A stretch of 64,000 nt of DNA from Macrostomum lignano (lineage: Eukaryota). Under the pieces are notes generated by a model that had not been told where the DNA came from, did no database searches, and was given only the letters and a program-made list of their open reading frames with translations. Of the stretch, positions 1,681 to 29,635 are shown piece by piece (positions within the stretch are counted from its first letter, which is position 1; every line of letters begins with the position of its first letter). The translations under genes and the position numbers were made by a program. The stretch is taken from NCBI GenBank assembly GCA_002269645.1, contig NIVC01000493.1, forward strand, positions 310,001 to 374,000. Direction: 5' to 3'.

Positions 1681-3621
1681 TCTTCAAGGCTCAATTACGA
1701 GAGATTCGTAGATCTACGGCAATCATATTCTCCACTCACTGAATTAGCCTACATGTAAAGTGCCTCTATATAGCAATACGGTGCACATTAACTTCGAAAA
1801 CTGAGGACTCATTACTGCAAAACGCTAAGGAAAGGATAGTAACTATAGCAAATTTTCTTGCTGCGCTTTACATGCATATTAAATTCAATATTAGTCTATT
1901 CAAATACAATTTACGAGTTGTTGATTCTTATTAGATAATAACATAAAATGTTATGATAACGTAGCATAAAGTTTTACGTGATTTGAAATTGTCATGGTGT
2001 GAGGAAATGCGTCTAAATTTTTACCTATAGTGTAGTATGTCACTTTGTCAATCTGCGACTGCAGCTTCGGATTACACCGAATTCGTCAACATCTCGCACC
2101 CCAGAAGGTTCAAATAGGTTCGAACTAATATGCCGCACACATTTACCTTGCTCCTTTTAAAAATCCCCAGTTTGCGATCAGGGACAACTAAAAAAGACAA
2201 CTAGAAGACAGCCTTTTCTAGTGCCTGTACGTTACATTGCATTCAATTTGTGTTCAGCAGTACGATCGTATGTAAACAATTAACATTTTACTTTCCATTT
2301 AGCGGACGTATAATTATTGGCTCTTTCCTTTACTTGCTTATCCATGTGAATCTACAGTACACATACTATAGCATGTACATCTTGTGTACAAATTTTTAAC
2401 AGACGTGCAAATACATCAATTGCAAATGTAACCTTGTCTAATTTAGTTAAAGCATATAATTCCAACTTTAAATTAATTTTTTTTAAGCTTTTAACTGTCA
2501 TTAATGCATTGGGCTATAAAGCTACCATTTATAACATTGTAGTTTGTTTTACCAGTAATAAAAACGTTTTCAAAGATTTTTAAATCTATTAAATCTACTA
2601 TTTTTTACTCTAATTTCTGACGTAGATGGTGCAAATGCAAAACTGAATATATCTGGTATATAGTATTATATTAGCTGACCCGATTTTTTCGGTGCAGAGG
2701 GTACAGTGTGTAGATTAAGTAAGCCATCTATTGTTTCAGGCAGGCAGGCAGCGAAAAGGCTTTTTTCTCTCGCAGACGCCAGACGGTGCGTCATCCTGAC
2801 TAGGCCTAGGCCTATGGTTTATAAGAGCGCTGAATGCTATTACAACCTTTTTGTGATAAATTGTATTTGTATTAACTTTGCAGGATGCAAAGGTAAACCT
2901 AAAAAAGGTAACCTATATATATGTAAAATGTAGGTCAGGTCAGTACAAGGCCTAGGGCTAGGTGCAAATTCTCGCACTAATTGAAGTAATTGAATTATCA
3001 AGGGTGAAACCGAATTCGTCAACATCTAATTCGTCATCTCTGTTGACGAATTCAGTTTACCTTATCAAGCATTGTTGACAAATTCGGTTACCTGATGATA
3101 TGCTATTGACTAGCTAGTATATTTTTATAGGGAATTATATTTGTATGTACAAAGAGCTTGCGTGCACGGCAGCTGTTCACATAAGCTTAGAATTGCGTGC
3201 ATGGCAGGGCAGCCATTCACGTAAGCTTAGAATTGTGGGACTTCTTCAAGTTTATGTTGATAAAATACTTCCGATTTTTCGATTTTTCTGAAACTTGCAG
3301 TGGAGACTTATGGGGCACCCAAAATTACAAAAATGCAAAAAAAAAGTGTAGAAAGTTACCTGTATGGTTGAAGCAATGACGATTTACTTGATTCCCTATT
3401 CTCTTAATGAGGTTCGGTAAGAAAAAGTTTCTACAAATACATTTTTGAAAGTGTATCCACTTGACTTTTAATTTTATGGCACATGTGCTAGAACTTCATT
3501 AGGCCAATTAAAGATGAATATTAATATCTACAAATTAATATGCAAATGTTTTTTATGTTTGCGGATTATAGTTTTTCAATTTAGTTATAATGCATAGACA
3601 GTGCCATGTCACTGTGTGCTT

Positions 3622-4000
3622 GGGTCTCCCTAAAACACGCCCCGCACCACCCTGCAGCGCTACACATTAAAACAAATTGGACTATAACTGAAGACTAAAA
3701 AAATGCGTTTTCTGTTAAGCTTCAAAGCTTTTATTAAATTTAGTTTTTTTAATTTGAAATATAAAATTCAGTGAATAATAAGTGATATTAATAATAATAT
3801 TATTCAAGTAATAATAATATAATTTAATAATGAAAACGAGAATATAAAAAATAATAACAATATTTATAATAATAATTAAAGATATTTATTCTATTACTCT
3901 TACAACAAATAGTTTTCCTTGCAATCAAATACTGCATTGACAAAAAATGTTATAATGTGTAGCAGTTTGGGGCGGTGCGGTGCATGTTTTAGGGAGACCC
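3622..4000. mobile_element. MITE nested in the previous element, 8-bp TSD
   Basis: About 50-bp imperfect TIRs starting GGGTCTCCCTAAAACA; perfect TSD GTGTGCTT at 3614-3621 and 4001-4008; very AT-rich interior. Confidence 0.85.
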
Positions 4001-4267
4001 GTGTGCTTTTTTTTAAAAACTGCGACGTCACAACCCGCTCAATCTTTGCACTTGCACTTTCACTGCACCCAGCCAAAGCAATGTTTAAAACACGCACTTG
4101 TATTTCGCACCTCAAAACCAACTACTGTATAAGGCTAGATTACTAATTCTATTGTATTAAGGTAGTAACAGCACTTAATTTCGGTAAGCAAATTCATTTA
4201 GATAAAGTTATGTTGATTCAAGTTTATGTTGATATAATTAAACAGAGATTCATTGTCAAATAAATTC

Positions 4268-4760
4268 CAACTTGTTTCAACCCCCCCCCCTATTAGAATT
4301 GGAATTTATCAGCACAATCTTGAATAGGTCTCCATGCCTCTATTCAAGTTTATGTTGATAAAATCAATCCCCATGAAGAATCTCCCCACCCTAAACCCCC
4401 CCCCATTCCCCATGCCCCGGTGGTTGGTTTTAAGCTACAACCCCCCCCCCCCTATTAGAATTGGAATTTATCAGCACAATCTTGAATAGGTCTCTATGCC
4501 TCTATTCAAGTTTATGTTGATAAAATCAATCCCTATGAAGAATCTCCCCACCCTAAACCCCCCCCATTCCCCATGCCCCGGTGGTTGGTTTTAAGCTACA
4601 ACCCCCCCCCCCTATTAGAATTGGAATTTATCAGCACAATCTTGAATAGGTCTCTATGCCTCTATTCAAGTTTATGTTGATAAAATCAATCCCTATGAAA
4701 AATCTCCCCACCCTAAAACCCCCCATTCCCCATGCCCCGGTGGTTTGTTTTAAGCTACAT
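4268..4760. repeat. Tandem triplication of a ~161-bp unit inside the 3238-4891 element
   Basis: Three copies of poly-C-TATTAGAATTGGAATTTATCAGCAC...GTTTATGTTGATAAAATC...TTTTAAGCTAC. Confidence 0.9.
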
Positions 4761-5853
4761 ATAATTGGGTTAAAGCTACCTAAAAATGGAGCTCAAATTT
4801 GAAATCAGCACCATCAAAAACCCCTATAGAGACAAAATTATGATCCTATCCAAATTGAAACTATTTTATCAACATAAACTTGAAGAAGTCCAAATTGTGC
4901 CCACAGCATGCGTTTCTAACTTCCTGAATGTAGGAATGCAAACTTTTCATTCCAGGTTCCGGCCATTTTTTTAATTTTGCTGCCCAGGAAACTTTATTTC
5001 TTCAATTCAGCTCATATAGCATATATGATGATGCATGCATGCATTATTGTGCTTTAAGTTAAAATTAACTGGTTTTAGCTGGTTCTAAAGTTTGCTTGAA
5101 ATGAAATGTGCCACACACAGTTTACCAATTTATGGTCAATCTATGAAGCTGAAAGCCTGAGACCCCTCTTTTAATTGCTGATGCATATCATGGCATGCAT
5201 GTATAGTATTACAACATTTATCTGTATTACATCTAAGTATTATAATGAAGCATGGAGCATGTATGTACAGTATTATGACATTTATCTGTATTACATCTAA
5301 GTATTATAATGACTTTGACAATTTGGTCGCCTATCTAGACCACTCTCGACCAGCTAGAGGTGCACTCTCAGGCCGCCTAACTGACAGAAGTAGAATGTGG
5401 TTGGGCTATAGAGCAAAGAATTAAAGAGTGTAGGGCTGTCATGCACACGCTTAAGTGCGGCACTTTGCTGCTTAGATGATGGTGAGGCAAAAAAAGAAGG
5501 AAGTGTGAGGCTTGATTGCCAAAAACATGAATGGTTACATATATATAGTCATGATCCAACCCCCCTCCTCTTCAAGCCAGATGATGGGTGTTAAATGTTA
5601 GTAATCCTTCAGACTCCCTCGCATTGCAAGTTAGGTTGTCTTGGTAAGTATAGTGTACTCGTACATTATATAGTACACCTTAATTTCATATTAAATGTTC
5701 TGCCTTTTTCTATCATTGATATAAAGGATGTTTTTCAGCATCGAAAGTAAGTAACCTGCGCTGACTGATGAGAACAAATTATTAGTGAACAATTATTAGA
5801 GGTGTTGTGTATTGCAAAGGCATGCAAGGCGTAGGGGTAGTTCGGGGACAGCA

Positions 5854-5951
5854 TTTCTAGAAACTTCTACCGCGGACTTGTTTATGCATAGTTCCAGAAG
5901 TTTCCTTCCCCGGTCTTTCTAGAACTTTCCTTCCCAGTGTGCATAAATATA
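5854..5951 (+). promoter_or_regulatory. Heat-shock-type promoter: three perfect 3-unit HSEs plus a TATA-like box
   Basis: nTTCnnGAAnnTTCn at 5854-5868, 5891-5905 and 5916-5930, followed by CATAAATA at 5942-5949. Confidence 0.75.
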
Positions 5952-6723
5952 CAAGCTGCCCTCCTATTGGCCAAGCCCTCTTTTGGTACCACTGAGCGCC
6001 TGGATAATTATCTATCTTGTTTTTGTGTTCGTTAATTCAACAATAGAACAAGAGGCTCGCAAGAGAAATGGTGCAAGAGAGCTAAAGGGTACATAGTTTA
6101 TTTGTCAGACAAAATTCTTATACCATTACACTGTATAATGGGAAGCCAGGCATAAAGGGGAGGTGCACAAATAGTGACGTGAGTCATCTGCCATTGCAGA
6201 CACATCTAGTTGGGTAGGAGTCACCCCGTGCAATGCGTGCTGGAGCCTGCATGCAAGTTCGAATGCACCCTACTATAGCTCTCTCATAAACGTGTCTGTG
6301 CATGCACCGCCACAAGACAATTTTTCATATGTCAATCAATGTTGAATGAATGAGGTTAGATTGTCTGCCAACAAAAATTTGAATATTCAGCATTTAGCCT
6401 TTCGATCATATGCTGGCACAAATCAATTAATTTTACTTTGTCCTTTTTAGAACTCGGAAGATATATCTCAATATGAAGTATTATACACTTGGAATACTAA
6501 AACATACAAGAAAAGGGAAATCTTAATATGGCAATACTCAGACATACCTAGTAGACATACAGCTATATCGTATATCTACATGTGCATGATATGTACATTG
6601 TACATCATGACATATATGCTGTCGCCATGATATACTGCAGCAATTAAAAGAGGGGTTTCAGGCTTTCAGCTTCACAGACCGATCATAAATTGGTAAACTG
6701 TGTGTAGCACATTTCATTCAATG

Positions 6724-6916
6724 CCGTGTACGCAATTCTGAGCTTACGTGAATGGCTGCCATGCACGCTATTCTGAGCTTACGTGAATGGCTGCTGTGCA
6801 CGCAATTCTGAGCTTACGTGAATGGCTGCCGTGCACGCAATTCTGAGCTTATGTGAACAGCTGCCGTGCACGCAATTTTGAGCTTGCATGAATGGCTGCC
6901 GTGCACGCAAGCTCTT
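6724..6916. repeat. 35-bp tandem array (GTGCACGCAATTCTGAGCTTACGTGAATGGCTGCC), about 5.5 copies
   Basis: Read directly; an inverted ~2.5-copy version lies at 3152-3237. Confidence 0.9.
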
Positions 6917-9195
6917 CGTTGTATATATGTGGATTTTAAATCTGCTAAATTCAGTGAATTGCAATAAATCCCTGGAACTTTGTACACATTTTAAAATCTA
7001 AAGTCATACTTTGTGAATAGTTAAAGAAATAACAAACTTGGAATAAAAATTGAATTAAAGTGACCTGCTTCACTCTAAAGATGCAATAAACTATAATGAA
7101 GCATATACAGCACACAAACACCCAATAGACTAGCTCTTGATATACTTGCATCTGGATACTCAACTAAATAGATAGAATATAGTACATATATTATGTACAT
7201 AGCATTGATTGAACAATTCATTAGATTTGAGTTGTATATGCACAATAGCATTTAGAATGAGTACTCATGAAGTCTTATTGAAGTCTTTGGCAATATTTTG
7301 CTCATTGAATAAAAAAAATTATGATTATTGCTTCAAGCAATAAACTTTTAGTAAGTCTGTCTTGTTGTTGACAAATTCGCTCAGCTTTTTAACTGTTGAC
7401 AAATTTGATTTCCTTCAATTTCTTAAATTTTAGGTCTGTTGACAAATTCAGTATAACCCTGCAACAAGATGTCAAATGGGCTATTCCATTTTTTGCAACT
7501 TTACTAAAAACTAAAAGAAAATAAAAATTCTCATCTTTGCCCAACAATCTAGATCTAAAAATGGAAAATTGCATAAAAATGCATTAGAAATCATATTATA
7601 ACAAATATGAGACATTGAGACATAACAACATGCAGCTTAAAAAGATTCCCTAAACACAAAATATTTAATGTAAAAAATCTTTCTCATTTTTATTTCAATG
7701 GCTAGAGTTTTGGCAGTTGCAAATCTATAAAATTTTGAATGGGGATACAGATTACTAAGCCAAGTAGCAAGCTATGTATATATGTCATATAAGATTTTAA
7801 AAATGGCAATATATGATATCATGCCCAACCTCAAAATTTCACCCATCCAGTGCAACTTTGCAACTTTGTTTTTCTCAATTGTGACTTAGTTCCTCTCAAT
7901 TGCAACTTAATTTTCACTTTGTAATATGAATTTTTTTGCCTTTTACTCTTTTTTCTCTTTCCTCTTTCCCCTCTCTTTCTTCTCCTTCCTTTCTTTTCCT
8001 TTTCTCTTTCTCTCCTTTTTCCCCCAATTTTTCATTTTTCGTGTTTTTCAATTTTGAGACTTACCTTAGCTAGCGGCCATTTTGGTCAGGTATTGGGCAT
8101 GTATTATATGATATTATATATAATGTATTGTTTGCTTGTGGTTGCCATTCAAATTTCTGTGTTGAAGTAAAAAAAGTGAAACAAGTCAAAAGATGTTGCC
8201 AGGTCAATCAAGTTTGAGGTTTGTAAATGTAAATTTTAGTTAATAGTATATAAGGCCTATCTGTTTTAAAATTAGAAACTGTTTCTAATTAAATATTTAG
8301 TTTGAGAACTATTAGAATAAGGCAAACAATTAACTTATGTAAATAAAACAAGTATTAAGCTCTACTTATTTTTCCAGTAAGCTTTTAAAAGACCTCCAAC
8401 TACCTTCCTAGTCAATCCTAGATCCTCAATTTGATAAAGATTGCAACTATCCTTAGTTTTTTATCTTTAAATAATCTAGAATTTTATATATTTTATTTTT
8501 CTAAAGTAAAATAAACTTGCAAAATTAATTGAAAAGTGTACCTATAAGTAATTGTCCATAGTCTACAAAGCCTTAAAGCCTATATGGTCTTAGAGTCCTT
8601 TGAAATTTCACAATAGGCCCTAGCAATATAGCTAAGTCAAGGCTTATGTCTCTTTTCAGCCATCTTCTTTCTAATCTCTTTTCCTCTCCTTTACTTTCTT
8701 CTTTTCTTTTTTCTTTTCTTTTTTCTATCTTCTCTTCTCTCCTTATTTTTGTTGCCTCTTTTCTGCTATCTCTCTTCTTTGTCTCTATTCCTTCTTCTCT
8801 CTTCCCTTTTCTAGACCATTGTCATACTCTAGGCCCCTAGTTTTTCTATTTGGAACTTAAATAAAAAGTTTGGCAATCCCTGATTTAAAAAATGATCTTT
8901 ATGCTAAGATTCCTGAATTTAGTATTCTAGCTATTCATCTTTGTTTGATATATAGGTTGGTATAATATCAGCTACATAGATGAAGGCTAATAGGGTTGGC
9001 ATGCTTAGCATAATGTTATAAGAATTTGAACATTTTGATCAAATATAATTATATACTAGCAGCCTACCTAATGTACTTGAAGAATATAACTATAAGTTAG
9101 ACATTTGATTATAATAAATAATTGTCATTGGGACATTGAAGGACAGGTTGGTTTTAGGTTAATCACTAATTTATTAGAATATAATATTATATATG

Positions 9196-10104
9196 AGGGC
9201 TGTCCAAAAAGTAGTATTACTTTTCACTAAATCTCTTGTTCTGCTGATCCAAATAACATCATTTTGCACAGATTTATGGTGGCAACTCTCTTCTTTATGT
9301 TAACTTTAACATCATTAAAAGCAGACAATGGAAACAAAAGTTATAAACTAAAATGTAGTAGGACCTCAACAATAGACTTACAGTAAGTAAGCAACTGGCC
9401 ACAGTAAATGACTGCAAAAGACCCATGAGCCTATGAAAGTTGAGCATGAATCTTGACTCAACTGTCCCCACGTCCCCTAAAGGGTATATATCATACTCCT
9501 TTGAGCAACACTTGAATGCACATCTAGGAATTTTTGCATAGCAAAAAGAGGGAACAAACAGTACTATAGTTGAAGCCCAGTTTAAAATATTCTGTTGCTT
9601 CAACAAAATATGCTTCTCTAATTTTCCATAGATATCTTTTTGTCACAGTAGCCTAACAAAGAAGTCTGAGTGCATTCTATCAAAAGTACTTTTGCTACTT
9701 TCCACTAACTTGTTGAATTACTGTAAGTCTATGGTCAAGGTCCTGCTACATTTAAGTTTATAACTTTTTATAAAGTTAAAGTTAACATGTATCAGATTAA
9801 ACATGCCTTTTGAGGGAGTTATTTGTATAAATCATGAGGGCCTGAGGCCCGAGGGATTTATGAAAATAACTCCCGAAAAAGGCATGTGTAATCTCGTATA
9901 AACCATAGACATAAAGACTTTATGGGATATTATTGAATATTACCAAATAAAATCCCGGAGAACGCAAATATTGTCACGGAAAGTCTTTATTTCTATGGAT
10001 TATAAAGAAGATAGTTGCTGCTATAAATCTTTGCAAAATGATGTTATTTGGATCAGCAGAACAAGAGATATAGTGAAAAGTAACACTAATTTTTGGACAG
10101 CCCT
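9196..10104. mobile_element. Non-autonomous TIR transposon (mariner- or Harbinger-like termini)
   Basis: About 95-bp TIRs AGGGCTGTCCAAAAA...CTGCTGATCCAAATAACATCATTTTGC at 9196-9290 and 10010-10104; TSD degenerate (TGA/TTA); no transposase ORF. Confidence 0.8.
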
Positions 10105-10215
10105 TAGCTTGTATATATATTGTTAAATATGCATATTTTTTGTTAATTGTAGACTTGCTGAATTTTTTTCCAAAATTTCCAAATTAAATATTATTAATAT
10201 TGATCCCAATCATTC

Positions 10216-10560
10216 ATGCAAATGGCTAGTAGTGCTGACCCATCAAATTCAGCAGCAGATGGAGACAATTTCGCATCAGACAAGGCCTCTCAGCCAGGTG
10301 TTGACCAGATGATTGATGCTATTGATGATGGCACTTGGGGTGGCTGGATCAAGAAGCACCTGGCCATGCTGCTTGTGTATGCGGCAAATAATCCTACTAC
10401 ATTTGTTTACTATGTGCTAATAGTGATGTCTCCATTGCTGATTCTCAGTGCAATATGCGCCTACAAGTTGGCTAAGGAGATTGAACAGCGAAACAAAGAC
10501 CAGAAGCGGAAACAGCGCCGAGATGCAAATATTAAAAAATCTCGCAGTAAGAAAGAATGA
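10216..10560 (+). CDS. SMIM15: Small integral membrane protein 15 homolog with an acidic N-terminal extension
   Basis: W..K.L..YAANNPTTFVYYVLIVMSPLLILSAICAYKLAKEIEQRNKDQKRKQRRDANIKKSRSKKE matches the SMIM15 pattern (WAAKDPYGF...PLF..SA.LSWKLAK.IE.REKEQK.KQKRQ.NI). Upstream acceptor AG at 10151-10152. Confidence 0.9.
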   Translation: MQMASSADPSNSAADGDNFASDKASQPGVDQMIDAIDDGTWGGWIKKHLAMLLVYAANNPTTFVYYVLIVMSPLLILSAICAYKLAKEIEQRNKDQKRKQRRDANIKKSRSKKE

Positions 10561-11389
10561 AAGATAATTAACAAAAAGTTTCCCACTGTATTCTCACTGT
10601 ATTAACAAATTTACTCTGTATTACTTCAGTGTATAATAGATGGAGAAAATTGAAAATTATGCGCATTTTACCAACTTTGTTTGTAAAAAATGTTTTTTTC
10701 TTGGTGCAAATTTGCTTTTTTAATTTGGTCGTATTTTGTCAGTAATTCGCTTTGACGCTACTTTCAGCAAGTATAAAGTGTTTTATTCCGAAATTTGATT
10801 GGAAAGATATAAAAAGATCGTCTAATCGGTAAATACTTCTACTTAAATTTATTTAATTTCATAAGCAAGCTTATTCTTTAAGTCTGCTTTAGCTGTTCGT
10901 TTTGTCATGAAATCATGGAACCTCTTAATTATTTTAAATCGATTGTCTGATGTTAGTCAGTTAGTGTAGTTTTTCATATAATATATTGCTTTCATTTTTT
11001 TCTATCTAAATTTGAGCTATTCACGCAAAATATATTGTAATGAATTAGCTTATTGTTTTTGTTACTACTGCTAATAATCAAAATATGTATTAATTAAAAA
11101 TTAAATCTAACGGTTAACGCTAACTGCCGTCTTAACTCTAAGTCTAAGTCTAATATAATGTTATAGCTGTTATATTATACTTAGTATTTGATTATCTGTT
11201 TTCATAAACATGATACAGAGTTAAATAATTCATTATGCACATTACGTCGAAATTTAATTGTGGTAGTTACTAAGGCTTCTTGTTCTTGCAAGTTGCAACT
11301 AGAAAGAATTAAATGATGCGCATTGGCTTCGATTGCCGAAAACGGTATGAATAGGGTTATAATACACAGCTTCTCTGCCATTTGATCGG

Positions 11390-11462
11390 GGTCCCATGGT
11401 GTAGTGGTTTAACACACTGGACTTTGAATCCAGCGACCCGAGTTCGAATCTCGGTGGGACCT
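11390..11462 (+). tRNA. trnQ-UUG: tRNA-Gln, anticodon TTG
   Basis: GGTCCCA/TGGGACC acceptor stem, GTGT/ACAC D-stem, CTGGA-CTTTGAA-TCCAG anticodon arm and GTTCGAATC T-loop; Pol III T6 terminator at 11488-11493. Confidence 0.97.
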
Positions 11463-13777
11463 AGCTAAATAAGCGGCCCATGACGGGTTTTTTACATCAT
11501 TTTTCACATTCATTACAATTTTACGTTCACTATAGTTACCGTCTAAAGAACAATTCAATCAATTTTTTATGACCGGAGGTCAAGAAATTTTTTTAAGAGA
11601 GCATTGTACTGAGTACTTTTATACTAAAGTTGTACCTACCACATATATGTAAATAAATGGCTAGGAATACAATTTTGCGAAATTTTGGTAATAGTAAGAT
11701 AAAATTAATTCATTTGCTCAATAATTTTAAATTAAATTCTTCACTGCAAGACAAATTCTAGTTGGCCCGATATGTTGAGTAGATAACTTTATAAGGCGTA
11801 AAATGCAATTGAGGACTTGTTTCTGTTTTTGGAAATTCTCCATGAGGTGAAATCAAATGACGCAGCAACTGTCATTTACGCGATAGTTTATTAAAGTAAA
11901 AGCTTTTTTTAAATATTTGCTTGCATCAGCTTGCGTGGGGTTGTTTCGCGTCGAATTGCTCTGGAGAGATACGAGACTTCACAAACCTGAATGGCTGAAA
12001 TATGGTTGTACATGTATGGAACCTAACATAATCAGTGAGCTAGACTTCAGAGTTGCAAGAGGAATAATTATTTTATGCGCTGAATTAGGTAATCATTGTT
12101 GAGCTAATAATTCATTTCTTTATTCAAGGTTAAAGCTAACTAATTTTTACTTCATGGTGCTTCAAAAAGTTTTACATGCAATTTGCTTAGCAACTTTTGG
12201 AAATGAAAACGAAGATTGAGGAATGGGAAGTGCCAAAATTTTGCTTCGGCTTCGTGAAGTATCCCGAGAGTCTTTCCAGTGCACCTCGGGGTTGTGAAAC
12301 GGCTGGTTAAGAATTTAGACAATGTGAAGTTTCGGGATCTGCTCATGTCCCAATGCGAATAATGTAAATATCTGAGTCTACCATAAATAGCGCGTCTTGA
12401 TATGGAAATCGCTGTCATACATTTATGAACTCATCAATGTGTGGCCCGGGACATGTCTATGGTCTAAGCTTGGGGGGGGGTCGAAAAAACCATTTAAAGA
12501 TCTTAAGCTTGCGAGTCTGTGTGACTTATCAGCCATGCTTGTGAGTTGTGACGTGAGTCTATAAAGCTCTGATGTTGACTGTATGGTGTGCAAACTATAC
12601 ACTGTACACGGTGTGTACATGTTATAATCCCTGCGATCCCGATCGGGATTTTTGCGACCCCTGGTTTCTGAGCAACACCTGCCGCTGTGCTGCATCTGGA
12701 GACGTGCCTGCCGTACAAGAACCAACTGAACTGTAGATGGTGAAATTTGCGTCACAAGGCCCAGCTTAGGCTGGTAAAAAACTGCAGAGAGTGGAGAGTT
12801 ATCGATCTGCCACTTGTATGCTGACCACTGGTTTCGGGGTGGGCTGATTTTAGTTTCTTTCTTGCAATTACTGCATGTCTCCTGCTTTTTATAAGAAAAT
12901 GGAAGATTAATATGTCGATGCCGCGTGACTTGTGCCATAGACTATTTTATCACAAAGCATCGATATATTAGTGTCATTGTAATCTCAATAGTATATTTCA
13001 TAGACATGCGGCTTCGCTTCTTACACGCTGCACTGAATCGCCGTCACCCATAGAGAACTCTCCTTTCACACTGACTTTAAGACTATAAGAAAGGAAAGGA
13101 GTAATCTAAGATTGAGATAGCAAATAGAACTTTAGAATGGAGCCCGCTCTAATTAAAGGACCGTGGATATCGCGGTACCTTCGATTTGGCAGTCGACGAG
13201 ATGCCGAGATGCGGCAAATGTCACAGAGTCTGTCGCTGTGTCGCTGCATTCCGATGGCAAGAATCTGGTATCAGCCCGCAAGAAAGATCCCACATGTATG
13301 CCAATAGCTGCCAGGCAAGAAGGCGCGGTTGTTTCAACTATCGAGTCAGTGACAATTGGTCAGTCAATCAATACATTTACCGTCTGCCACTGTTACACGG
13401 ATTCGTCTACGATTGGCAATCGACTTAATGGTGTTCAATTTCCACTGACAACTCTACGACTGAGTGTTTCGTGGTTCGAGACGACATGGATGATGGAATC
13501 ACTGATTTACATTGTGAGTTTACTTTCTATGAACGGTGTTGAATTTGCTCTGTGTAAATATAATCAGTTTACTTGCATCCTGAAAAAATAAATATACGTC
13601 GTACTTTGGTCAGCGCGTAATCGATGCAGTTGTCTATGGTCCAGACACTACGTTTCTTACACGCGGACCTGCGTTTTGTTCACGCTGCTCGACCGCGCTT
13701 TGTTTAATGTGTTCAAACCAAGAAAACTGCGTTTCTTACACAGTACACAAGTCATTTAACACACGCACTACGAGCGT

Positions 13778-14292: not shown

Positions 14293-16076
14293 CAAGACTC
14301 AAGACTCAGATACATTGATATATTCCTGCACGGTCACGAGTGCACGATGTCCTTCACGCACGAGTGAACGTGAAGGAATTCCATTGTCGGATGATTCATC
14401 GTGCAGGAATGCACAAAACCGTGCAGGAATGCATTTCTGCGCCTAATGCTTTTTCAGTGAGATTTTACCATAGACATCCATTCCTGCACGCAAAAGAGTG
14501 CAAGAATGCCATTCTTGCATGGAAAATCAGCCGACAATGTCTCACTTCACGGTAATAAACCCCTGCTTAATGGCTGGTCATTAACTGAGTCTTGTTTCGA
14601 CCACAGACAATTCAATCAATGCAGATACTACGCACATTCGTGACCAAAGAATACTGAGCTATTCTTTGCTCGTGACCTTTGACCATTAACTTAAATTTTC
14701 GCTTCATATTAACCTTCCATTAATCATAAACTAACTAGAGTCTATACTCAGCAACATTGAAAAGTCGCCACCCTTTGCCCCAGTGAGCAGTGTCTTTCGA
14801 CCAGCATCTATCACCTGGCCAACCATTTTGATATTAAAAAATCTTGAAAAAAACAATGAAAACCGGGCGGAGGTTTCAATCCATCCAATCTTCGTCCTCC
14901 GCTCTTCCCAATCCCTCCTCACCCAGCCCAACTCTGCGTCGCGTGGCGCAAGTTGCGTCACTCAAAAGTCAATAATACTGAGCTAGAATTTACTGCGCAC
15001 TCTCAAAGGTTGCGACTTTTCAATGTTGTTGAGTATATACTGCCGAGCATGGGCAATCCATTGGCCATTAGACGCAGAGAAGCAGGAGTGAGTGAACGTG
15101 GTCTTTCGGCAGCAGGGCTACCAACTGGAATTGCCTAGTTTTAGAAGATAAAATAAAATCTAGCCACTTTTATCTATGGCAAAAAGCTTCTTTGTTTTAT
15201 ACTTGATGCATTTCATTGATATTCTCGCAATCCCTACTATAAGTAATAAAAATCATACCACTAACTATAATGTACTCGAAGGTACAAAAAAGTACTAAAT
15301 TCTCGAACTCTCTTACTTTCAGCCATGGACAATAATACAATAGCTTAAAAGAATGAAATACAGGCTAGTCGGGCCCGTCTGTAGGATATATATTAGAGAC
15401 TAAACCGGCTCAGAATATTTAGCACTACAAGTCCCAAATCTTACTCTCTTAGCAGACGCATTGTGTCCCATTGCAATCCTTTCGATCAACTCTCACGGAT
15501 CAATTAACTGCATAGCATAATAGCTCATTCAACAGTTGAAGGATTTTTCATCAGTAAGTATAGGTGAGTCATCATGTCTGAGTCGTCAGTGCATGCACTT
15601 GTAACCTTGGTGTACTTTTATCTTACTAAGTTGTATTTGTTGTCCAAAACAGAAGCTGTTTTGCTAATTGGAAGGTGATAAACAGCTAGTAAGTCTTCCA
15701 TGGCGGCCTTATTGTACAATGAATGTACCAGCGCTAGGCCAATTAGCGATAAGAAATGACCTAATTAAGCTAGTGTACACAGAGTCAATAGAGCTATTCA
15801 ATTTATAGAACTCGCAGTCTAGTCGACTGATAATTATCGATCCGCCCCGATTCAGTTCAGACCTGTGCAGACTGGAATTACCTGCAAGCCAAGCCGATTC
15901 AATTAATTATAAAACACACCTCTGGCCTAGACAGGCCAATCAGAACTGTCCAATTTATTATTGCGAAATAGAGGCGCAACTAAGCTACGAATTAGGCTTA
16001 AGCGCAGTGCACAACAGTCTGAACTTGGTGAGTTAGTCTCTCTGCCACACCCCCGACTGGAAGCCAAGCCGCTGTC

Positions 16077-16083: not shown

Positions 16084-16197
16084 CCAGGCCAGACTCGCTG
16101 GCTGTCTCTTCACTGCCACTTCAATAACATTTTGACGCTTCCTGTCTGCAGATTGTCCTGTTTTCTCCTTTCTCTTCTCAGAGCTAACTTGATTAAG

Positions 16198-17025
16198 ATG
16201 TCCGCCCTCTATCCGAGCAACGTGTTCAAGTCGTTCGAGTATCCGAACCGGATGCAGAGCATCTTCGAGGACTTCAACGACCTGTTCAGCGATGCCCTGT
16301 TCCACCCGTTCTACGAGCTGGAGCGCAACCTGCAGCCCAAGCGTCACCGGGCCGCCCATCACCGCTACTTCAGCACCGCCGTCAAGCTGAGCGACTTCCG
16401 CGCTGACGAGGTGGCCGTCAAGGTAGAGGATCGCAAGGTGCGCATTCACGCCAAGCGCCAGGAAGGCGAAGACATGTCCGAGGTGCGCAAGACCGTCGCC
16501 CTTCCGGAGGATGTGGACGCTGACAAAGTGGAGACTCTCATGACCAAGGAGGGCTTCCTCGTCGTGCGGGCGCCCTACATCCGCGCTGAGAAGAGCGGCA
16601 GCGGCGACGCCAGCAACGCCCTGGCCCAGCTGGGTGCTAACAGCTGGGACGAGATGCGTAGCCTGCTGCGCGGTCCGGGCATCACCTCCGTGCACGAGCA
16701 GCTGGTGAAGGACGAGAAGACCGGCGAGACTCGCTTCCAGGTCACCGTGCCGGTTCGCGACTTCCACCCGGAGGAGGTTACAGTGCGCCAGGTCGGCGAC
16801 CGAGTTGTCGTCCGCGCCGAGCATCGCGACGAGCGTGAAGGCCAGCTGGTGCACCGCAGCATGCACCGAGAGTTCACCCTGCCGCAGGGCGTCGACCGGG
16901 AGCGTCTGGTCAGCCGGCTGACCGATTGCGGCACCCTGCAGATCGAGGCGCCGGCGCCGAATCTGGCGCTGCCGGAGCCGCGCGACATTCCGGTGGAGAA
17001 CAAGATGGAAGTGACCGAGAAGTGA
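16198..17025 (+). CDS. Small heat-shock protein with two alpha-crystallin domains (p40/major egg antigen/Tsp36 type), intronless, 275 aa
   Basis: ACD1 FSTAVKLSDFRADEVAVKVEDRKVRIHAK...LPEDVD...EGFLVVRAP; ACD2 FQVTVPVRDFHPEEVTVR...REFTLPQGVD..LVSRLTDCGTLQIEAP; C-terminal IPV motif; GC-rich codon usage; AATAAA near 17262. Confidence 0.95.
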   Translation: MSALYPSNVFKSFEYPNRMQSIFEDFNDLFSDALFHPFYELERNLQPKRHRAAHHRYFSTAVKLSDFRADEVAVKVEDRKVRIHAKRQEGEDMSEVRKTVALPEDVDADKVETLMTKEGFLVVRAPYIRAEKSGSGDASNALAQLGANSWDEMRSLLRGPGITSVHEQLVKDEKTGETRFQVTVPVRDFHPEEVTVRQVGDRVVVRAEHRDEREGQLVHRSMHREFTLPQGVDRERLVSRLTDCGTLQIEAPAPNLALPEPRDIPVENKMEVTEK

Positions 17026-21700: not shown

Positions 21701-24700
21701 CTATTCGAGACTTGATTGATTTCTAGACTCATTTTTTGTGCTGGGATTTTGTGCTTTTTTGTAGGATGTGTGTTTCTTTTGGTTTTCTGGGTGACGGCCA
21801 GTCAGCTTGGTTGCTTTATTTTTTTTTCTGTTGCTTTCACAGCCACAGTTCGTACATTATTTATTAAGCGGTGCTGCTCAGAGGACAAAATGCTTTATCC
21901 GCTCTGTTTTCTTACTTTTTCTAAACCTCATCCTGCTGATACAATTATCAGATGTGCCAAGTAGGGAGTGAGGGCCAGGGAGTGAGGGGCAGGGAGTGAG
22001 GGGCAGGGAGTGAGGGGCAGGGAGTGAGGGGCAGGGTGTGAGGGGCCTGGAGTGAGGCAGTGAGGGGACTGGGTTAAGTTGAGGCAGTGAGGGGCCTGGA
22101 GTGAGGCAGTGAGGGGACTGGAGTGAGGCAGTGAGGGGCCTGGAGTGAGGCAGTGAGGGGCCTGGAGTGAGGCAGTGAGGGGACTGGGTTAAGTTGAGGC
22201 AGTGAGGGGCCTGGAGTGAGGCAGTGAGGGGCCTGGAGTGAGGCAGTGAGGGGCCTGGAGTGAGGCAGTGAGGGGCCTGGAGTGAGGCAGTGAGGGGCCT
22301 GGAGTGAGGCAGTGAGGGGCCTGGAGTGAGGCAGTGAGGGGCCTGAAGTGAGGCAGTGAGGGGCCTGGAGTCCCTATATCAGAGCAGTGCAGCCCGTCAG
22401 CGGCTCACAATGGACACGAGGCCGCAGCAGCCGTAGCGATCCCATTTCTTGAGTTGCGGTCTCAGCCGCCTGTAGAAACAGTGCTCTAGCAGCAACAGCA
22501 GACAGCAGAACAGCATGCCGCCAATCAGGAGGATAAAAGCGCTGATGAAGTTCTTAACGCCCAGGGTCTGGTTGGTGTTCCTGAGCTTTCCGCTCTGCTG
22601 GCAGGCGCCCGTGATCCAGTACTTGCTCCAGCGCTCCAGCAGGCCTGCGGCAGTTGAGGTTTTCTAGTGGCTGTTCCATCTCAATCCAAATGCCAATCCC
22701 AATCCACATCCCCATCCCAATCCAAAGCCCCATCCCAATCCAAATCCCCATCTCAATCCCAATCCACATCCCAATCCCAATCCCAATCCAAATCCCCATC
22801 CCAATCCCAATCCACATCCCCATCCTAATCCAAAGCCACATCCCAATCCAAATCCCAATCCTAATCCCAATCCACATCCCCATCCAAATCTCCATCCCAA
22901 TCCCAATCCCCATCCCAATCCCAATCCCCATCCCAATACCAATCCCTATCTCAATGCCAAACCTAGATCCCAATTCCAATCCTAAATGTACATTCCAATC
23001 CCATCTAAATGAAGACATAGAATTCTAGCGGGCTAAAACGCAGGCAGCATACCGGAGCTCCTGTAGGACAGGATCCTGTGGTTAATGCGGTGCCGCCATT
23101 TGGATCCCTTGGGCAGGCCGATCCCGTAGCCGGTCATGGAGTACCAGTTGCCCACCGTCTTCAGCTTGCAGTCTTCGTCGTTGCCAACCCGGTACTGCAG
23201 CACCGTTGCGTCGTAAATGAAGGCGTCGATTTCGCTGGATTGAAAGGCAAACTGTTGTTGTAGTTTCCTCAAGCCCTTTCTCCCTGCCCTTTCTCCCCTG
23301 CCCTTTCTCCCCTGCCCCTTTTCCTCTCCCCTTTCTCCCTGCCCTTTTTCCTCTGCCCTTTCTCCTCTGCACTTTCTCCCTGCCCTTTCTCCCCTGCCGT
23401 TTCTCCTCTGCCCCTTTTCCTCTCCCCTTTCTCCTCCACCCTTTCTCTGCCCTTTCTCCTCTGCCCTTTCTCCCTTGTCTTTCTGCCCTGCCCCTTCTCC
23501 TCCTCTCCCTGTTCTCGGATCCCCTTGGCTGCCTTCTCCTATCGTTCGAGTCTCTGTCTATCCACGAGTATTTATTTCGATATATAGTTTTAATTTTGGC
23601 AATAAAATAAAATAATCTTACAAAGTTTTCAAAGTGCGAATGCCCTCGTCAATATTGCTTTTGCTATAGTTGCGCATGTGATTCGCAATGTCCGGATAAT
23701 TCATCCGCATGTTCTCCTCAGTGGCTCCGGACGGTACCGTGGCGAAACGGAACGGCGGTCGATGGCTGGTCGGATCCCGTAGACGCCAGTCGTTGATGCC
23801 GGACAGGTCGTAGTAAGACTCCTCGGCGATCATGAAGGCGGCAAGGTTGGCCGTGTACGAGGCCAGGAACACCAGGGCGAATAGGGCCCAGATGTTGCCT
23901 AGGAAACGGCTGGCAACGCCGCGCGGGTTGTCAGCGTTCACCGCGGCGCCAAATAGCATCGACCAGATCAGCCAGAGAGAACGGAATAGGCTGAACTTGT
24001 GCTCTGCGGGGGGGTGGTGTGAAGGTTGTAAAATAGGCTGAACATTTGCTCCGTGGGGTTGGGGTGGGGGTTGTAGAATAGGCTGAACTTGTGCTCTGTG
24101 TGGTTGGGTGCGGGATGTAGAATAGGCTGAACATTTGCTCCGTGGGGTTGGGGTGGGGGTTGTAGAATAGGCTGAACTTGTGCTCCGTGGGGTTGGGTGC
24201 GGGATGTAGAATAGGCTGAACATTTGCTCCGCGGGGTTGGGGTGGGGGTTGTAGAATAGGCTGAACTTGTGCTCCGCGGCGTTGGGGTGGGGGTTGTAGA
24301 ATAGGATTGTCAGCTGAACTTATGCTCTGCAGAGCGGCGGCTTTTTGGAATAGATTGAGCCTTCTTTTCCTCACCCCTGGGCGGCACGTTGCCTTTATCG
24401 AGGCCTTGCGGACTGAGCCACTCGAACAGGAACAGGGCAGCGCCGCAGGCGTGCACTGAGAACACGAGAATGAGACACCAGGACGGATAGTCGTACGGCT
24501 CTGCAAAAAAAGAATCCAAATGGAAGCGGCGCTAAAATTTCCTAATGCGCATAAAGTGGCAACGAGAGGGACTCACTGAGAAAGGCCTTAGTAGAAATGG
24601 CCCCCTCGCGAAGAGCTACCAGAATCGTGATGCCGGTTCTATGAAAGGGCACGCTGAACTCGATCTGTTCACTACGATTCGGCGTGATCTTCAGGGACGT

Positions 24701-27700
24701 GACAACCATGTCGGCCTGGCCCTCCAGCAGCACTCGGACCAGTCCGTTCCACTCGTTGTTCTGGTTTTGGGAGTTCCAAGGGGGTTCAGCAGCTTAAGTA
24801 TGATACTAAATAAAATCATTTTGTGTCATTTCTGAAATTTTAGTAAATCGTTAGTAAAATATATGAACTGCTTTTGTTGCAGTGTATTTTTTCGTACACT
24901 CGGCCTTCAAATATTTTCTAGGAAACATAAGCCACAGACCAGCTTACCGTCCAGCCGCCCCACTTCTTGTCGGGCACCTCGAACAGATCCACCTCGAAGT
25001 TCAGATCTTTCATCAGCTCTCGAAGCAGATCGATGGCCAGACCGGAGCAGCAGCTGGCAGTGTAGGGCAGGCTCTCCGACTGGTTTCCAGCTGACCAGTT
25101 GTAACTGGGAGAGAAATGTGCAATTTGATTATATACAAATATGGCGCTGCTAGTACCAATGAGGGATAGCGAGTCAGGAGGTCATTGTAGGTGTCAGAAG
25201 GTCATTGTAGGTGCCAGTAGGTCATTGTAGGTGTCTGGAGGCCATTTTGGGTGTCAGTGTCAGCAGAAAGTCATAGCCAGTGTCAGCGGGCAGTCATAGC
25301 CAGTGTCAGCGGGCAGTCATAGCAAGTGCCAGCATGCAGTCATAGCCAGTGTCAGCAGGCAGTCATAGCCAGTGTCATGATGCAGTCATAGCCAGTGTCA
25401 GCATGCAGTCATAGCCAGTGTCAGCAGGCAGTCATAGCCAGTGTCATGATGCAGTCATACGAGTAGCCAGTGTCAGCAGGCAGTCATAGCCAGTGTCATC
25501 ATGCAGTCATTGGTGTCATCATGCAGTCATAGCCAGTGTCATCATGCAGTCATAGCCAGTGTCATCATGCAGCATTGGTGTCATCATGCAGTCATAGCCA
25601 GTGCCAGTCCCTCACCGGTCGGGCAGGCTGGCATTCTCGGCCAGCACCCGGCACGGCAGGGACACCGGGTCGCAGGCCTCGCTGCCGGGCGGCTCCGGGG
25701 GCCTGTAGCGCACGAACGGGTCCTCTTTAAGCGTGGCCGCTCGCAGCCGAAATTTCTTCGGCCGGCCCAGAGGCGCCTGGCTGGCCAGGCCGGGCCAGGT
25801 GACGCCCTGCATGTCGAATGAGGTGCCGCCCAGAGACTCGTGCTGGCTGCTCATGGCCCAGCGGCCAACCGGGTGCCAATAGGTGGAGTCCTTCAGACTG
25901 TTGGGCCGCGAGTTCAGCAGCACGAATTCGGTTGTGTTGAGCAGGCCGCGACGGTCGAAACCGATGTACTCGCGTTTGTCCTCGTTGCCGCACTCGTAGC
26001 AGTGGGAGCTGTTGAGGGCCAGCCTGGGGACAGCTCGGTGGGTGCGGGATGTTGGGGATGAGGCTGAGTTGATGGTGATGAGGCTGAATTGATGGTGATG
26101 AGGCTGGGTTGATGGGGATGAGGCTGGGTTGATGGGGATGAGGCTGGGTTGATGGGGATGAGGCTGGGTTGATGGGGATGAGGCTGGGTTGATGGGGATG
26201 AGGGTGAATTGATGGGGATGAGGCTGAGTTGATGGTGATGAGGCTGAGTTGATGGTGATGAGGCTGAGTTGATGGGGATGAGGCTGAGTTGATGGGGATG
26301 AGGATGAATTGATGGGAATGAGGCTGAATTGATGGGGATGAGGCTGGGTTGATGGGGATGAGGGTGAATTGATGGGGATGAAGCTGGGTTGATGGGGATG
26401 AGACTGAGTTTATGTAGTTTATTTTAGTTTACCGTAGTTTATAATACCGAGCTCATGGGGAATGGGAATTGAATTGCTCAGATGGAGATTGGGCTTGATA
26501 CAGAGCGATTATGAGACACTCAGCAAACTCATCAAACCTGAAAATCTCCTTGCCATCGGGCCAGAACAGGCCTGTGGTATTTGAGCACTTGAATGTCGGC
26601 CGCATCCGCCTCAGGATGTCGAGGTTGGTGAGGCTGCCACCGGCTGCCACAGATTGCTGCAATAATCGCTGTTTGAATTGTCGCAGAGCCTGGAACCACA
26701 GTTGCGATGCCACTGTGACCGCTTTGACAAGATTGCTGTCGTAGTAAAGGGCTGAAATGGTTTTTAGTGGAGTGTAGAATTGCCTGTCTCCCAGCCATAG
26801 ACAGTTCCACCTGCCTAATTAGAACTCTGCCATAGACAGTTCCACCTGCCTAATTAGAACTCTGCCATAGACAGTTCCACCTGCCTAATTAGAACTCTGC
26901 CATAGACAGTTCCACCTGCCTAATTAGAACTCTCCCATAGACAGTTCCACCTGCCTAATTAGAACTCTGCCATAGACAGTTCCACCTGCCTAATTAGAAC
27001 TCTGCCATAGACAGTTCCACCTGCCTAATTAGAACTCTCCCATAGACAGTTCCACCTGCCTAATTAGAACTCTGCCATAGACAGTTCCACCTGCCTAATT
27101 AGAACTCTGCCATAGACAGTTCCACCTGCCTAATTAGAACTCTGCCATAGACAGTTCCACCTGCCTAATTAGAACTCTGCCATAGACAGTTCCACCTGCC
27201 TAATTAGAGCTCTGCCATAGACAGTTCCACCTGCCTAATATCTTTAGACATCTATCAATTGAAGACAGCTCTACCTCTATCTCGAAACCTCTATCCATCA
27301 GAGCCAAATTGGATCACTAACCAAATAATCCAGCAATTCGAATTGTGCCTAAGTTGGAATCGAATCCAGATTTTAAGTCGCTTGTCGGACTCGTCACTGC
27401 CGATGGGGACACAATCCACAGGTAGTCCTTGTCGAATAGAATGCCAAATCTGCTATTCTTGATGTGCACCCGATGTACCAGCAGTCTGAGGTCTGCGCTG
27501 CGGGTGGCGAAGTTGAGGTGGGATGGTGGATCTTAATTTTGCTACCTGCGTGAACCTGATTGTGCCACCTGGATATGCTACCTAATTACTAATAAAATTT
27601 ATAATAATAATTGCAGGGAGGGTTGCGTGCCCCCTTCGGCGACATAGTCTAACTAACAACCAGCGCTGACGGCAATTGTGCCCATCCCGCTGACTCCTGA

Positions 27701-28571
27701 GCACAAATGAGCACATACATACTTAATATAGGATGCGACACGCATGGTTCTTGTAATTTTTTGGAGGCTGGCATGGAAAATAATTTAGTGTAGATCTTTT
27801 GTTTATTTATGAAATTTTTCCAGTTTTTTTTATATAAATATATTTCCGACTCGCTTAGTATATCGTTTAGAGATGTCTGGAGACTACATTTTGCAGCACC
27901 CCTGACAATATTCGTGTACAACAAGTATGGGACTGGTTGCTCACAAGTTTCCGTGCAGGAAGAAGATTCTGTCATCGCCAGAGACCAACCGCCTCAGCAC
28001 GCTGTCGTAAGCTCGAATGCAGCCGGTTTGATTGCAGCGCCGCATGTCGGACACCTGGGCAACCCCGTCGAATGTGAGCACCTGGGTGACCTCGAATCTG
28101 GAATCAGAGGGGGAGGGAAGGGCTCAGAAAATACCCATTCTTTCCAACGTACCCCTCCCGACCCGCTGATTGGCTAACTGAGCCAGTTGAAAAAACAAGC
28201 CGATAGCCAATAGGAAAACCTGCTTGCCTGACTCTCCAGTTACCCCACAAGCTTCACTCCCGGTCTACCCCTCTGGGCTTGCTGATTGGCTAGCTGAGGC
28301 TGGCCAAAAATGAGTTTATTAGCCAATTGGAATGCAGCTTGCCTGAATACGTTGGGATCGTTCATTTCATGACTGTCATCCGCCAGATTTTTTAGGCTCT
28401 CAATAACAGCCTGCCAGCCAGGCGTCTGCTTCGAAGCGATGATGCACAGCCTGCGCCACTTGTATATAGCTAAGAAGTCTGCCACAGCTCTGGCCACGTG
28501 GTGCGCGCCCGGCTCCAATCTGATGCACATGGGCTGCTGTTCCATCTGATGGATTGGTCGGATGAAGCCAA

Positions 28572-28618
<47 letters not shown>

Positions 28619-28629
28619 GTGTGTGTGTG

Positions 28630-28694
<65 letters not shown>

Positions 28695-29523
28695 GCCTGT
28701 CCCAAGTGTCGCATCCGGGGCACATGAATTCAGTGCATACAAAGCAAAATTCTGTCATGCTTTTTTCTGCATCATCAAAAAAGTTAGAATTAAAAATTGC
28801 AAATGAAGCGAGGATAAAATTTGCAGTTTCTTAGACAACACAAAATAGCTCGTGCAAGGAGCCGGTACAGTCGCCTCCATCGTTCAATGAAAACTTTCAG
28901 TTGTGCTTCTCATGCAGCGATCATGCAAATAAATATATGCATTCGTCTCTCACCCTCGACTTGATAGGCAATTGCTGGAATTGAAAGAGTCAAAATACCC
29001 TGCATCTCTTTTCTTTTGCTCATTATCTGACGAGGCACCCCCTCATCTGCTCACTCACATCGAGCTGGGCCACCGCATTGCCCAGGTAAGTGAAGCACGG
29101 AATTCCAAGCGAAGTGAGCAGGTGCATCAGGTATTCGGTAGATCTGGTTGCTATGCGGGTGTGAACGGATCGCCGAGACACAGAGGCGATGAGCAGCGCG
29201 TTCGCGTAGCTCGGCTCGTCCAGCTCCAGCATCCGGCAGACAGTCCTGATGAGTTTTCTGGGAGTCTGGGCGCTGCTATCAAGATTCTTGAGGTCGTGCA
29301 GTACAAACTCGAAGAGGGTCTCGTTAAGTGATTTCTGCAGCGCGGCCAGACTGGTCTGCAGCTGGTTGTAGCGCGGCCCAGCCTCCTTCATGGACTCGAT
29401 GGAGTCCAGCAGCACCGGCTCCATGCACAGCTTGTGCAAGAACTGCAACTGCTGCGACTCGACGGGCCCCAGCACCAGCCACAGCTGCAGAAGCGAGGAG
29501 AACTGCAGCACCAGCGACCGCAT
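18758..29523 (-). CDS. Nmdar2: NMDA-type glutamate receptor GluN2-like subunit, 14 coding exons, 1237 aa
   Basis: Exons (-): 29059-29523, 28343-28545, 27945-28097, 27322-27497, 26538-26751, 25616-26023, 24948-25104, 24577-24760, 24375-24500, 23622-24003, 23053-23234, 22409-22644, 20307-20584, 18758-19307. They total 3714 nt with all phases compatible. Signal peptide, ATD, S1 ([16 protein letters not shown]), [10 protein letters not shown]2 (AFIYDATVL), M4, the invertebrate NR2 tail motif [18 protein letters not shown] and a C-terminal ESVL PDZ ligand are present. Confidence 0.93.
19590..20058. repeat. 29/30-bp minisatellite (GCCTTGCCATCTCAGCAATTCCCCCCGTAA), about 15 copies, NMDA intron
   Basis: Read directly. 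Confidence 0.95.
20661..21222. repeat. 14-bp G-rich minisatellite (GGGAGTGAGGGGCA), about 40 copies, NMDA intron
   Basis: Read directly. Confidence 0.97.
21963..22370. repeat. The same 14-bp unit resuming, then switching near 22040 to a 22-bp unit (GGGGCCTGGAGTGAGGCAGTGA)
   Basis: Read directly. Confidence 0.9.
22674..22985. repeat. Degenerate (AATCCC)n hexamer array, NMDA intron
   Basis: Read directly; source of the IP-rich and GI-rich ORFs. Confidence 0.9.
23270..23515. repeat. CT-rich degenerate ~16-bp array (CCCTGCCCTTTCTC)
   Basis: Read directly. Confidence 0.8.
24004..24330. repeat. 44-45-bp tandem array, about 7 units, containing a copy of the start of NMDA exon 10
   Basis: Each unit contains GAATAGGCTGAAC(TTG/ATT)TGCTC, matching 23984-24004. 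Confidence 0.9.
25190..25605. repeat. Degenerate ~23-bp array (GCAGTCATAGCCAGTGTCAGCAG)
   Basis: Read directly. Confidence 0.85.
26053..26405. repeat. 20-bp array (GATGAGGCTGGGTTGATGGG), about 17 copies
   Basis: Read directly. Confidence 0.92.
26795..27240. repeat. 35-bp array (GCCATAGACAGTTCCACCTGCCTAATTAGAACTCT), about 12.5 copies
   Basis: Read directly. Confidence 0.95.
28572..28697. repeat. (TCTG)n/(TG)n compound microsatellite
   Basis: Read directly. Confidence 0.95.
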
Positions 29524-29635
29524 GGCAACTGTGGGGTGGCGGCGGAGTTCGTGTGGGAACTGTGCCGTCAGTTCTGCTGACATTCACACTTTTCAGTGAT
29601 GCTCACAGGCTCCTACGTGTGGCGGCCCTGCCTCC

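Follow-up and report, generated by a model that had tools for sequence, protein, structure and literature searches.

A promoter-like module consisting of three perfect heat shock elements (HSEs) followed by a TATA-like box was identified in a 64-kb stretch of Macrostomum lignano DNA (the whole of this stretch is hereinafter referred to as the window). Judged from its sequence, the module is probably derived from a transposable element (TE), namely a solo LTR (approximately 5803-6050) of an HSE-bearing Ty3/Mdg4 (Mag-like) retrotransposon, and is not a host chaperone promoter. The LTR would have landed near the middle of a non-autonomous TIR transposon older than itself, in the TE-rich spacer between an anoctamin gene and SMIM15. 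HSE-bearing TE promoters have already been published for M. lignano, and the module is another such promoter. If its origin as a solo LTR is true, the "orphan" heat shock promoter recorded in a preliminary description of this DNA is no longer puzzling.

Genomic setting and copies of the locus

The module was located in an AT-rich spacer of 8.5 kb, with the anoctamin gene on one side and SMIM15 on the other, and 4.2 kb separated it from the SMIM15 acceptor downstream (Table 1). The genome of M. lignano is that of a hidden polyploid, and its assembly is redundant (PMC12801592). The SMIM15 protein of the window shared a 90% cluster with three M. lignano proteins (PAA61496, PAA69013, and PAA68454), and three further copies of the locus, L002 (NIVC01002027.1), L003, and L004 (NIVC01001394.1), were retrieved via the cluster members. 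Over 9.9 kb, the window and L002 shared 97% identity. In L004, the module was present with the same HSE spacing as in the window (37 and 25 nt). All HSE cores, the TATA box, and the inner inverted-repeat arms were kept in this copy, and the outer right terminus of the surrounding TIR element was recognizable, with two mismatches.

Table 1. Positions of the module, the enclosing elements, and the neighboring genes in the window.
Feature	Position	Strand	Remarks
Anoctamin gene	exons 77-340, 654-884, last exon 1480 to stop ~1678 (end ~1680)	+	upstream of module
4.29-kb block	2875-7163	.	in window and L004, absent from L002; no TSD or TIR at ends
Outer non-autonomous TIR DNA transposon	3151-6917	.	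termini AAAGAGCTTGCGTGCACGG / CCGTGCACGCAAGCTCTTC
Second TIR element	3238-4891	.	nested in left arm of outer element; 40-nt TIRs (GGACTTCTTCAAGTTTATG...); 8-bp TSD GAATTGTG/AAATTGTG
Inner inverted-repeat arm, left	5100-5194	.	pairs with 6624-6718 (95 nt, 91%)
Candidate solo LTR	5803-6050	+	248 bp, TGTTGTG...AGAACA; AGAGG at 5798-5802 and 6051-6055
HSE 1, TTCtaGAAacTTC (= TTCTAGAAACTTC)	5855-5867	+	next base t in window, c in L004
HSE 2, TTCcaGAAgtTTC(c) (= TTCCAGAAGTTTC)	5892-5904	+	trailing c
HSE 3, TTCtaGAActTTC(c) (= TTCTAGAACTTTC)	5917-5929	+	trailing c
TATA-like box, CATAAATA	5942-5949	+	13 nt past HSE 3; unchanged in L004
Donor-like GTGAGT	6179-6184	+	overlaps AP-1-like TGAGTCA; kept in L004, as is everything around
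Inner inverted-repeat arm, right	6624-6718	.	adjoins 35-bp repeat array
SMIM15 (UPF0542)	acceptor 10152/10153; ORF 10216-10560; CDS 10222-10560; part 10137-10560	+	acceptor tttttgttaattgtag/A (ttgtag/A)
tRNA-Gln(TTG)	11389-11463	+	Rfam 71.7 bits; ARAGORN; between SMIM15 and small HSP gene
Small HSP gene, two domains	16199-17025 (ATG 16199; TATATAA ~16079)	+	downstream of SMIM15

Structure of the HSE-TATA module

Both strands of the window were scanned for perfect trimeric HSEs of the form TTCnnGAAnnTTC. Three were found in the 64 kb, all of them in the module, at 13-95 nt upstream of the TATA box. The chance level was estimated with order-1 Markov sequences of the window composition, in which perfect HSEs numbered approximately 0.7-0.9 in 64 kb, and triple-HSE clusters (within 100 bp) approximately 4e-7 to 8e-7. 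The cluster is considered non-random because of this simulated expectation of approximately 1e-6 per window. Two characteristics of HSF-dependent promoters were found in the module: at least one HSE composed of three contiguous inverted nGAAn units, and HSEs a short way upstream of a core promoter (13-95 nt from the TATA box here, the usual range being approximately 40-250 bp from the TATA box or TSS). Its layout marks the module as a true promoter of the HSF type. The preliminary description had read this stretch as three perfect HSEs followed by a TATA box, as a cluster beyond chance, and as a layout of the HSF-bound type; the scan and the Markov simulation bore out the first two points, and three trimeric HSEs upstream of a TATA box make the third the right reading of the layout.

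Between the window and L004, seven substitutions were detected in 5850-5950, all of them outside the TATA box and the 27 core bases of the HSEs (P ~0.05). As an indication of constraint, the intact HSE cores and TATA box in L004 give a weak hint, the P value being marginal. The identity of the two copies was even at approximately 96% over 1.2 kb, and conservation does not single out the module.

Stop-to-stop fragments of at least 45 aa were listed for 1700-10200 on both strands, and those in approximately 3000-10200 were scanned against Pfam. None of the scanned fragments matched a Pfam family (no gag, pol, transposase, or HSP), which was in accordance with the earlier statement that no chaperone ORF lies downstream of the promoter. 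No Rfam family was found near the module on its downstream side, the sole match being the tRNA-Gln gene. The first ATG, at 6068, opened only five codons, and a transcript of the module would therefore be non-coding unless spliced.

A trimeric HSE array within approximately 100 bp upstream of the TATA box is a feature that the module shares with Drosophila hsp70 promoters and with the Mlig-hsp20 promoter, which is used in an M. lignano heat sensor (PMC6371448). In contrast to classical hsp70/hsp20 promoters, the module was not followed by a chaperone gene, was situated inside mobile DNA, and had no counterpart in one homeologous copy. Descent of the module from a host HSP gene of the hsp70 or hsp20 type, as a relic promoter left after the coding region was lost or moved, would agree with the classical layout and with the presence of a small HSP gene 10 kb downstream. 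Such an origin is nevertheless highly improbable: no HSP-like coding remnant was detected within 4 kb on either strand, a TIR element enclosed the module, the surrounding block was missing from another copy of the locus that retains the small HSP gene, and the primers for the promoter of Mlig-hsp20 (Mlig005128.g2; PMC6371448) matched nothing in the window.

Candidate solo LTR and the published HSE-bearing LTR family

A candidate solo LTR could be delimited around the module, with the HSEs and the TATA box in its U3-like part, and the same ends and flanks were present in L004. In simulated contexts, TGT...ACA ends with a 5-bp TSD pair arose by chance in 34% of cases, and the boundaries alone are not significant. 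Neither a clear polyadenylation signal nor a longer terminal inverted repeat was visible inside 5803-6050.

For LTR retrotransposons of M. lignano from the Mag, CsRN1, and Gmr1/Osvaldo clades, one to four canonical HSEs per LTR were reported, placed upstream of the TATA box/TSS (Ustyantsev et al., 2025, Mob DNA 17:3; PMC12801592). These HSE-bearing elements showed more than 250-fold induction at 37 C, mutation of the HSEs abolished the response, and solo LTRs of the HSE-bearing families occur near host genes, including mildly heat-induced ones (PMC12801592). In Mlig-id115|Mag, which is represented by 19 copies, there are three HSEs per LTR, all of the form nTTCnaGAAnnTTCc (PMC12801592).

Compared with this form, the HSEs of the window read TTCtaGAAacTTCt (with c in L004), TTCcaGAAgtTTCc, and TTCtaGAActTTCc. 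All three were TTC-first, all three had a before GAA, and the trailing c was found in two of the three, the remaining one having c in L004. Two traits of the Mlig-id115|Mag type, an M. lignano host and three HSEs of the nTTCnaGAAnnTTCc form, were found, and the HSEs were upstream of a TATA box as in the LTRs of this family (PMC12801592). As would be expected of a solo LTR, the module is an isolated promoter without coding sequence, and it has candidate TG...CA ends with a 5-bp duplication. It differs from Mlig-id115|Mag in being nested in a DNA transposon and in having statistically weak boundaries, and the two are likened by the described number and form of the HSEs. We favor an origin as a solo LTR because the HSE number and form match those of the Mlig-id115|Mag LTR and because the TGT...ACA ends and the 5-bp duplication are present. 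This origin is rated as probable and no higher, since the boundary signature alone is reached by chance at the above frequency and no clear poly(A) signal was seen inside.

No further copies of the module were found in the window, in L002, or in a paralogous SMIM15 locus (L001; NIVC01002788.1) by blastn and nhmmer. Further, concatenated six-frame fragments of the module gave no match as a query in a collection of 5.8 billion proteins, and an exact-pattern scan for the HSE2-HSE3 stretch gave none in JGI metagenome contigs.

L001, the SMIM15 protein of which showed 65% identity, contained one perfect HSE (TTCTAGAACTTTC) followed 25 nt on by CATAAAT (11307-11350), approximately 1 kb downstream of the SMIM15 paralogue. 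No homology was detected between this site and the module of the window outside the HSE. A family with a single HSE per LTR may have left this site as a solo LTR.

In Arabidopsis, the Ty1/Copia element ONSEN (ATCOPIA78) carries HSEs in its LTR, and its insertions can make neighboring genes heat-responsive. The module resembles ONSEN as a TE promoter that would use the host HSF pathway. ONSEN, however, belongs to a plant Ty1/Copia lineage and has another HSE arrangement, and the resemblance is convergent and not homologous. For annotation, the lesson is that perfect HSE arrays in M. lignano should be checked against a TE library first.

Nested transposons enclosing the module

The module was enclosed by a non-autonomous TIR DNA transposon, the termini of which matched at 19 of 20 positions. 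Subterminal 35-bp tandem repeats were arranged in inverted arrays (3158-3235 and 6722-6910), and the outer inverted-repeat pair (3149-3235/6722-6919) was made up of these repeats. The 8-bp TSD was GTATGTAC in the window (3143-3150) versus GTATGTAT on the right side in L004, with seven of eight positions matching, and the right flank in the window (6918-6925) was GTTGTATA, with a 3-bp indel. For 3151-6917, two characteristics of a hAT/P-like non-autonomous TIR transposon were found, namely TIRs and a TSD of fixed length abutting the TIRs. No transposase domain was identified in this element with Pfam, and approximately 135 kb of M. lignano DNA contained no other copy of it. L002 did not show an exact empty site of the element, the larger block 2875-7163 being missing there.

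Within the outer element, the inner arms bracketed 1.4 kb containing the module. The inverted-repeat arms that had been noticed on both sides of the promoter were confirmed, as both an outer and an inner pair. The interpretation of 5100-6718 as a decayed long palindrome centered on the HSEs was rejected, as only the 95-nt arms pair and the interior is not palindromic. The left arm of the outer element hosted the second TIR element, which contained a 162-bp unit repeated three times in tandem and a pair of 53-nt inverted repeats.

In L004, a foldback-type insertion of 2.9 kb (approximately 1765-4643), which had 470-nt arms with 97% identity (1895-2364/3500-3969), was absent from the window. It was situated approximately 35 bp upstream of the module or candidate LTR. 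Since L004 has gained this extra insertion, the surroundings of the module keep gaining insertions.

The HSE promoter could also belong to the interior of the inverted-repeat DNA transposon (3151-6917 or its core, 5100-6718) or have been captured by it as cargo, and the transposon would then be a heat-responsive element of the TIR/foldback type. This would be congruent with the position of the module nearly midway between the two 95-nt inner arms, and with the TIRs and the 8-bp TSD of the enclosing element. There is also a precedent for a DNA transposon carrying HSEs: Helitron1_CE, which is cited in PMC12801592, spreads HSEs in Caenorhabditis elegans and creates heat-inducible transcription units (Garrigues et al., 2019, eLife). 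However, the number and form of the HSEs fit a published LTR family (PMC12801592), a TGT...ACA unit with a 5-bp TSD can be drawn around the module, the DNA between the inner arms is heterogeneous and not palindromic, and the region demonstrably collects nested insertions. Considering both sides, we regard an origin of the promoter as a part of the inverted-repeat element as rather unlikely. Of the three options proposed in the preliminary description, that of a mobile heat shock promoter carried by the inverted-repeat structure came closest. Its mobile nature agrees with the position of the module inside a transposon bounded by TIRs and a TSD, and inside the block absent from L002, but a solo LTR nested in the inverted-repeat element is likelier than cargo of that element.

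In L002, the flanks of the missing 4.29-kb block were joined as ...TTTGTATTA/TAGGATG.... The block exceeded any single TE recognized within it, and no duplication was found at its ends. From the sequences compared, its presence or absence may be due to either an insertion in the lineage of the window and L004 or a deletion in L002.

The block was also considered as a Helitron, and this was rejected: its ends, ACTTTGC... and ...CAACTAAA, were without 5'-TC and CTRR-3'. The only Helitron-like traits were a 7-bp hairpin (CTTTGCAggaTGCAAAG; 2876-2892) and an A/T junction without a TSD. Unlike Helitron1_CE, the 4.29-kb block has no 5'-TC/CTRR-3' ends, and the element inside it has TIRs and a TSD, which are absent in Helitrons.

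Possible transcription from the module and relation to SMIM15

By analogy with the reporter results for M. lignano LTRs and with HSE/HSF promoters, heat stress would bring HSF trimers onto the three HSEs. Transcription on the + strand would start approximately 25-30 nt past the TATA box, with a predicted TSS at approximately 5970-5980. The transcript of a solo LTR would leave the LTR and enter the flanking DNA, yielding a heat-induced non-coding read-through RNA. Splicing of this RNA to the SMIM15 acceptor, 4.2 kb further on, may or may not occur. The donor-like GTGAGT and the SMIM15 acceptor, which the preliminary description had joined into a possible intron, were both present as motifs. Together they would allow SMIM15 to be expressed as part of a chimeric, heat-induced transcript.

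The region upstream of SMIM15 divided the four copies of the locus into two haplogroups, the window with L004 versus L002 with L003. The SMIM15 acceptor was the same in all four copies, and homology between the haplogroups started only approximately 70 nt upstream of it. Such a loss of homology is as expected for an outron of a trans-spliced gene or for an otherwise unconstrained region. Because L002 keeps both SMIM15 and the small HSP gene, with the same acceptor and without the module, the two genes are independent of the module, and presumably they are expressed without it.

These comparisons bear on the view that the module is, or became, a host promoter, which would produce either a heat-induced non-coding first exon (approximately 5975-6178) spliced to SMIM15 at 10153, or a lncRNA. 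The donor-like motif and a good acceptor shared a strand and were not separated by any gene, the HSE cores and the TATA box were intact in two copies differing by approximately 4-5%, and solo LTRs have been reported near mildly heat-induced host genes of M. lignano (PMC12801592). In contrast, L002 and L003 kept SMIM15 with an identical acceptor, L002 doing so without the module, and homology between the haplogroups began only approximately 70 nt upstream of that acceptor. In addition, the public annotation left the stretch from the module to SMIM15 without a gene, and the intervening 4 kb was TE-rich and varied between copies. On balance, a role as a host promoter appears unlikely. The other two options of the preliminary description, a heat-inducible SMIM15 through the non-coding first exon, and a heat-induced lncRNA or longer trans-spliced unit reaching the small HSP gene, are weakened as primary functions because SMIM15, its acceptor, and the small HSP gene persist in a copy without the module (L002).

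A more specific proposal is that the TE-borne promoter was co-opted in one subgenome only. Transcripts of the window and L004 would then start at approximately 5975 and be spliced from the donor at 6179 to the acceptor at 10153, and this SMIM15 homeolog would be heat-inducible, whereas the homeolog of L002/L003 would not. Although we consider this quite improbable on the present sequences, co-option in one subgenome would, if true, amount to an experiment of nature, set within one genome, on how TEs rewire the heat shock regulon of a polyploid flatworm.

With the module read as a solo LTR, its value is modest: it would provide a concrete example of a solo copy lying upstream of a host gene, at a distance of 4.2 kb. 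The L002 copy without the module would serve as a built-in control for LTR-spread heat inducibility of the SMIM15 homeolog. The gene identifiers are Mlig023540.g3 for the copy with the module in L004 and Mlig023540.g4 for the L002 copy.

Neighboring genes and minor features

The first in-frame ATG of SMIM15 in the window (10216) was not conserved, L002 and L004 having TTTCAGCAA at this position. The start common to all copies was the ATG at 10222, and the stop codon ended at 10560. The SMIM15 products (112 and 114 aa) were looked up for transcript contigs with a 5'UTR, and no record was obtained. A near-perfect hairpin palindrome of 50 nt, MITE-like, was observed at 9800-9900 (L004 9552-9652), approximately 250 bp upstream of the SMIM15 acceptor.

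The small HSP region (16132-17025, + strand) contained two alpha-crystallin (HSP20) stretches, TATATAA, and CCAAT boxes. No canonical HSE was detected within approximately 780 bp of the small HSP gene; the nearest motif, with one mismatch, was at 15300, and the earlier remark that no perfect HSE stands near the TATA box of this gene was correct. The gene is not the Mlig-hsp20 (Mlig005128.g2) of the heat sensor, as the promoter primers of the latter were absent from the window.

Exons of an ionotropic glutamate receptor were recognized at approximately 23600-29600 on the - strand (Lig_chan, with a weak ANF_receptor match), and the Lig_chan exons of the window agreed with the Lig_chan gene annotated beside the small HSP gene in L003. 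Long minisatellite arrays were present at 900-1430 and at 20.4-21.3, 30.7-31.6, 34.4-36.5, 38.2-39.2, 43.2-44.1, and 52.4-53.0 kb, the first of them within the last anoctamin intron. These arrays yielded spurious long ORFs on both strands.

A second, degenerate HSE-like layout was found at 12211-12391 on the + strand, with trimeric HSEs containing one mismatch at 12211, 12251, and 12326, followed by CATAAATA at 12384-12391. The third of these motifs (12326) was split by an insertion in L004. The layout could represent an exon (ORF 12152-12418, - strand) or a decayed promoter for the small HSP acceptors at approximately 16150/16181. The stretch at approximately 12160-12330 was nearly 100% identical among the window, L002, L003, and L004, versus a background of 96-97%.
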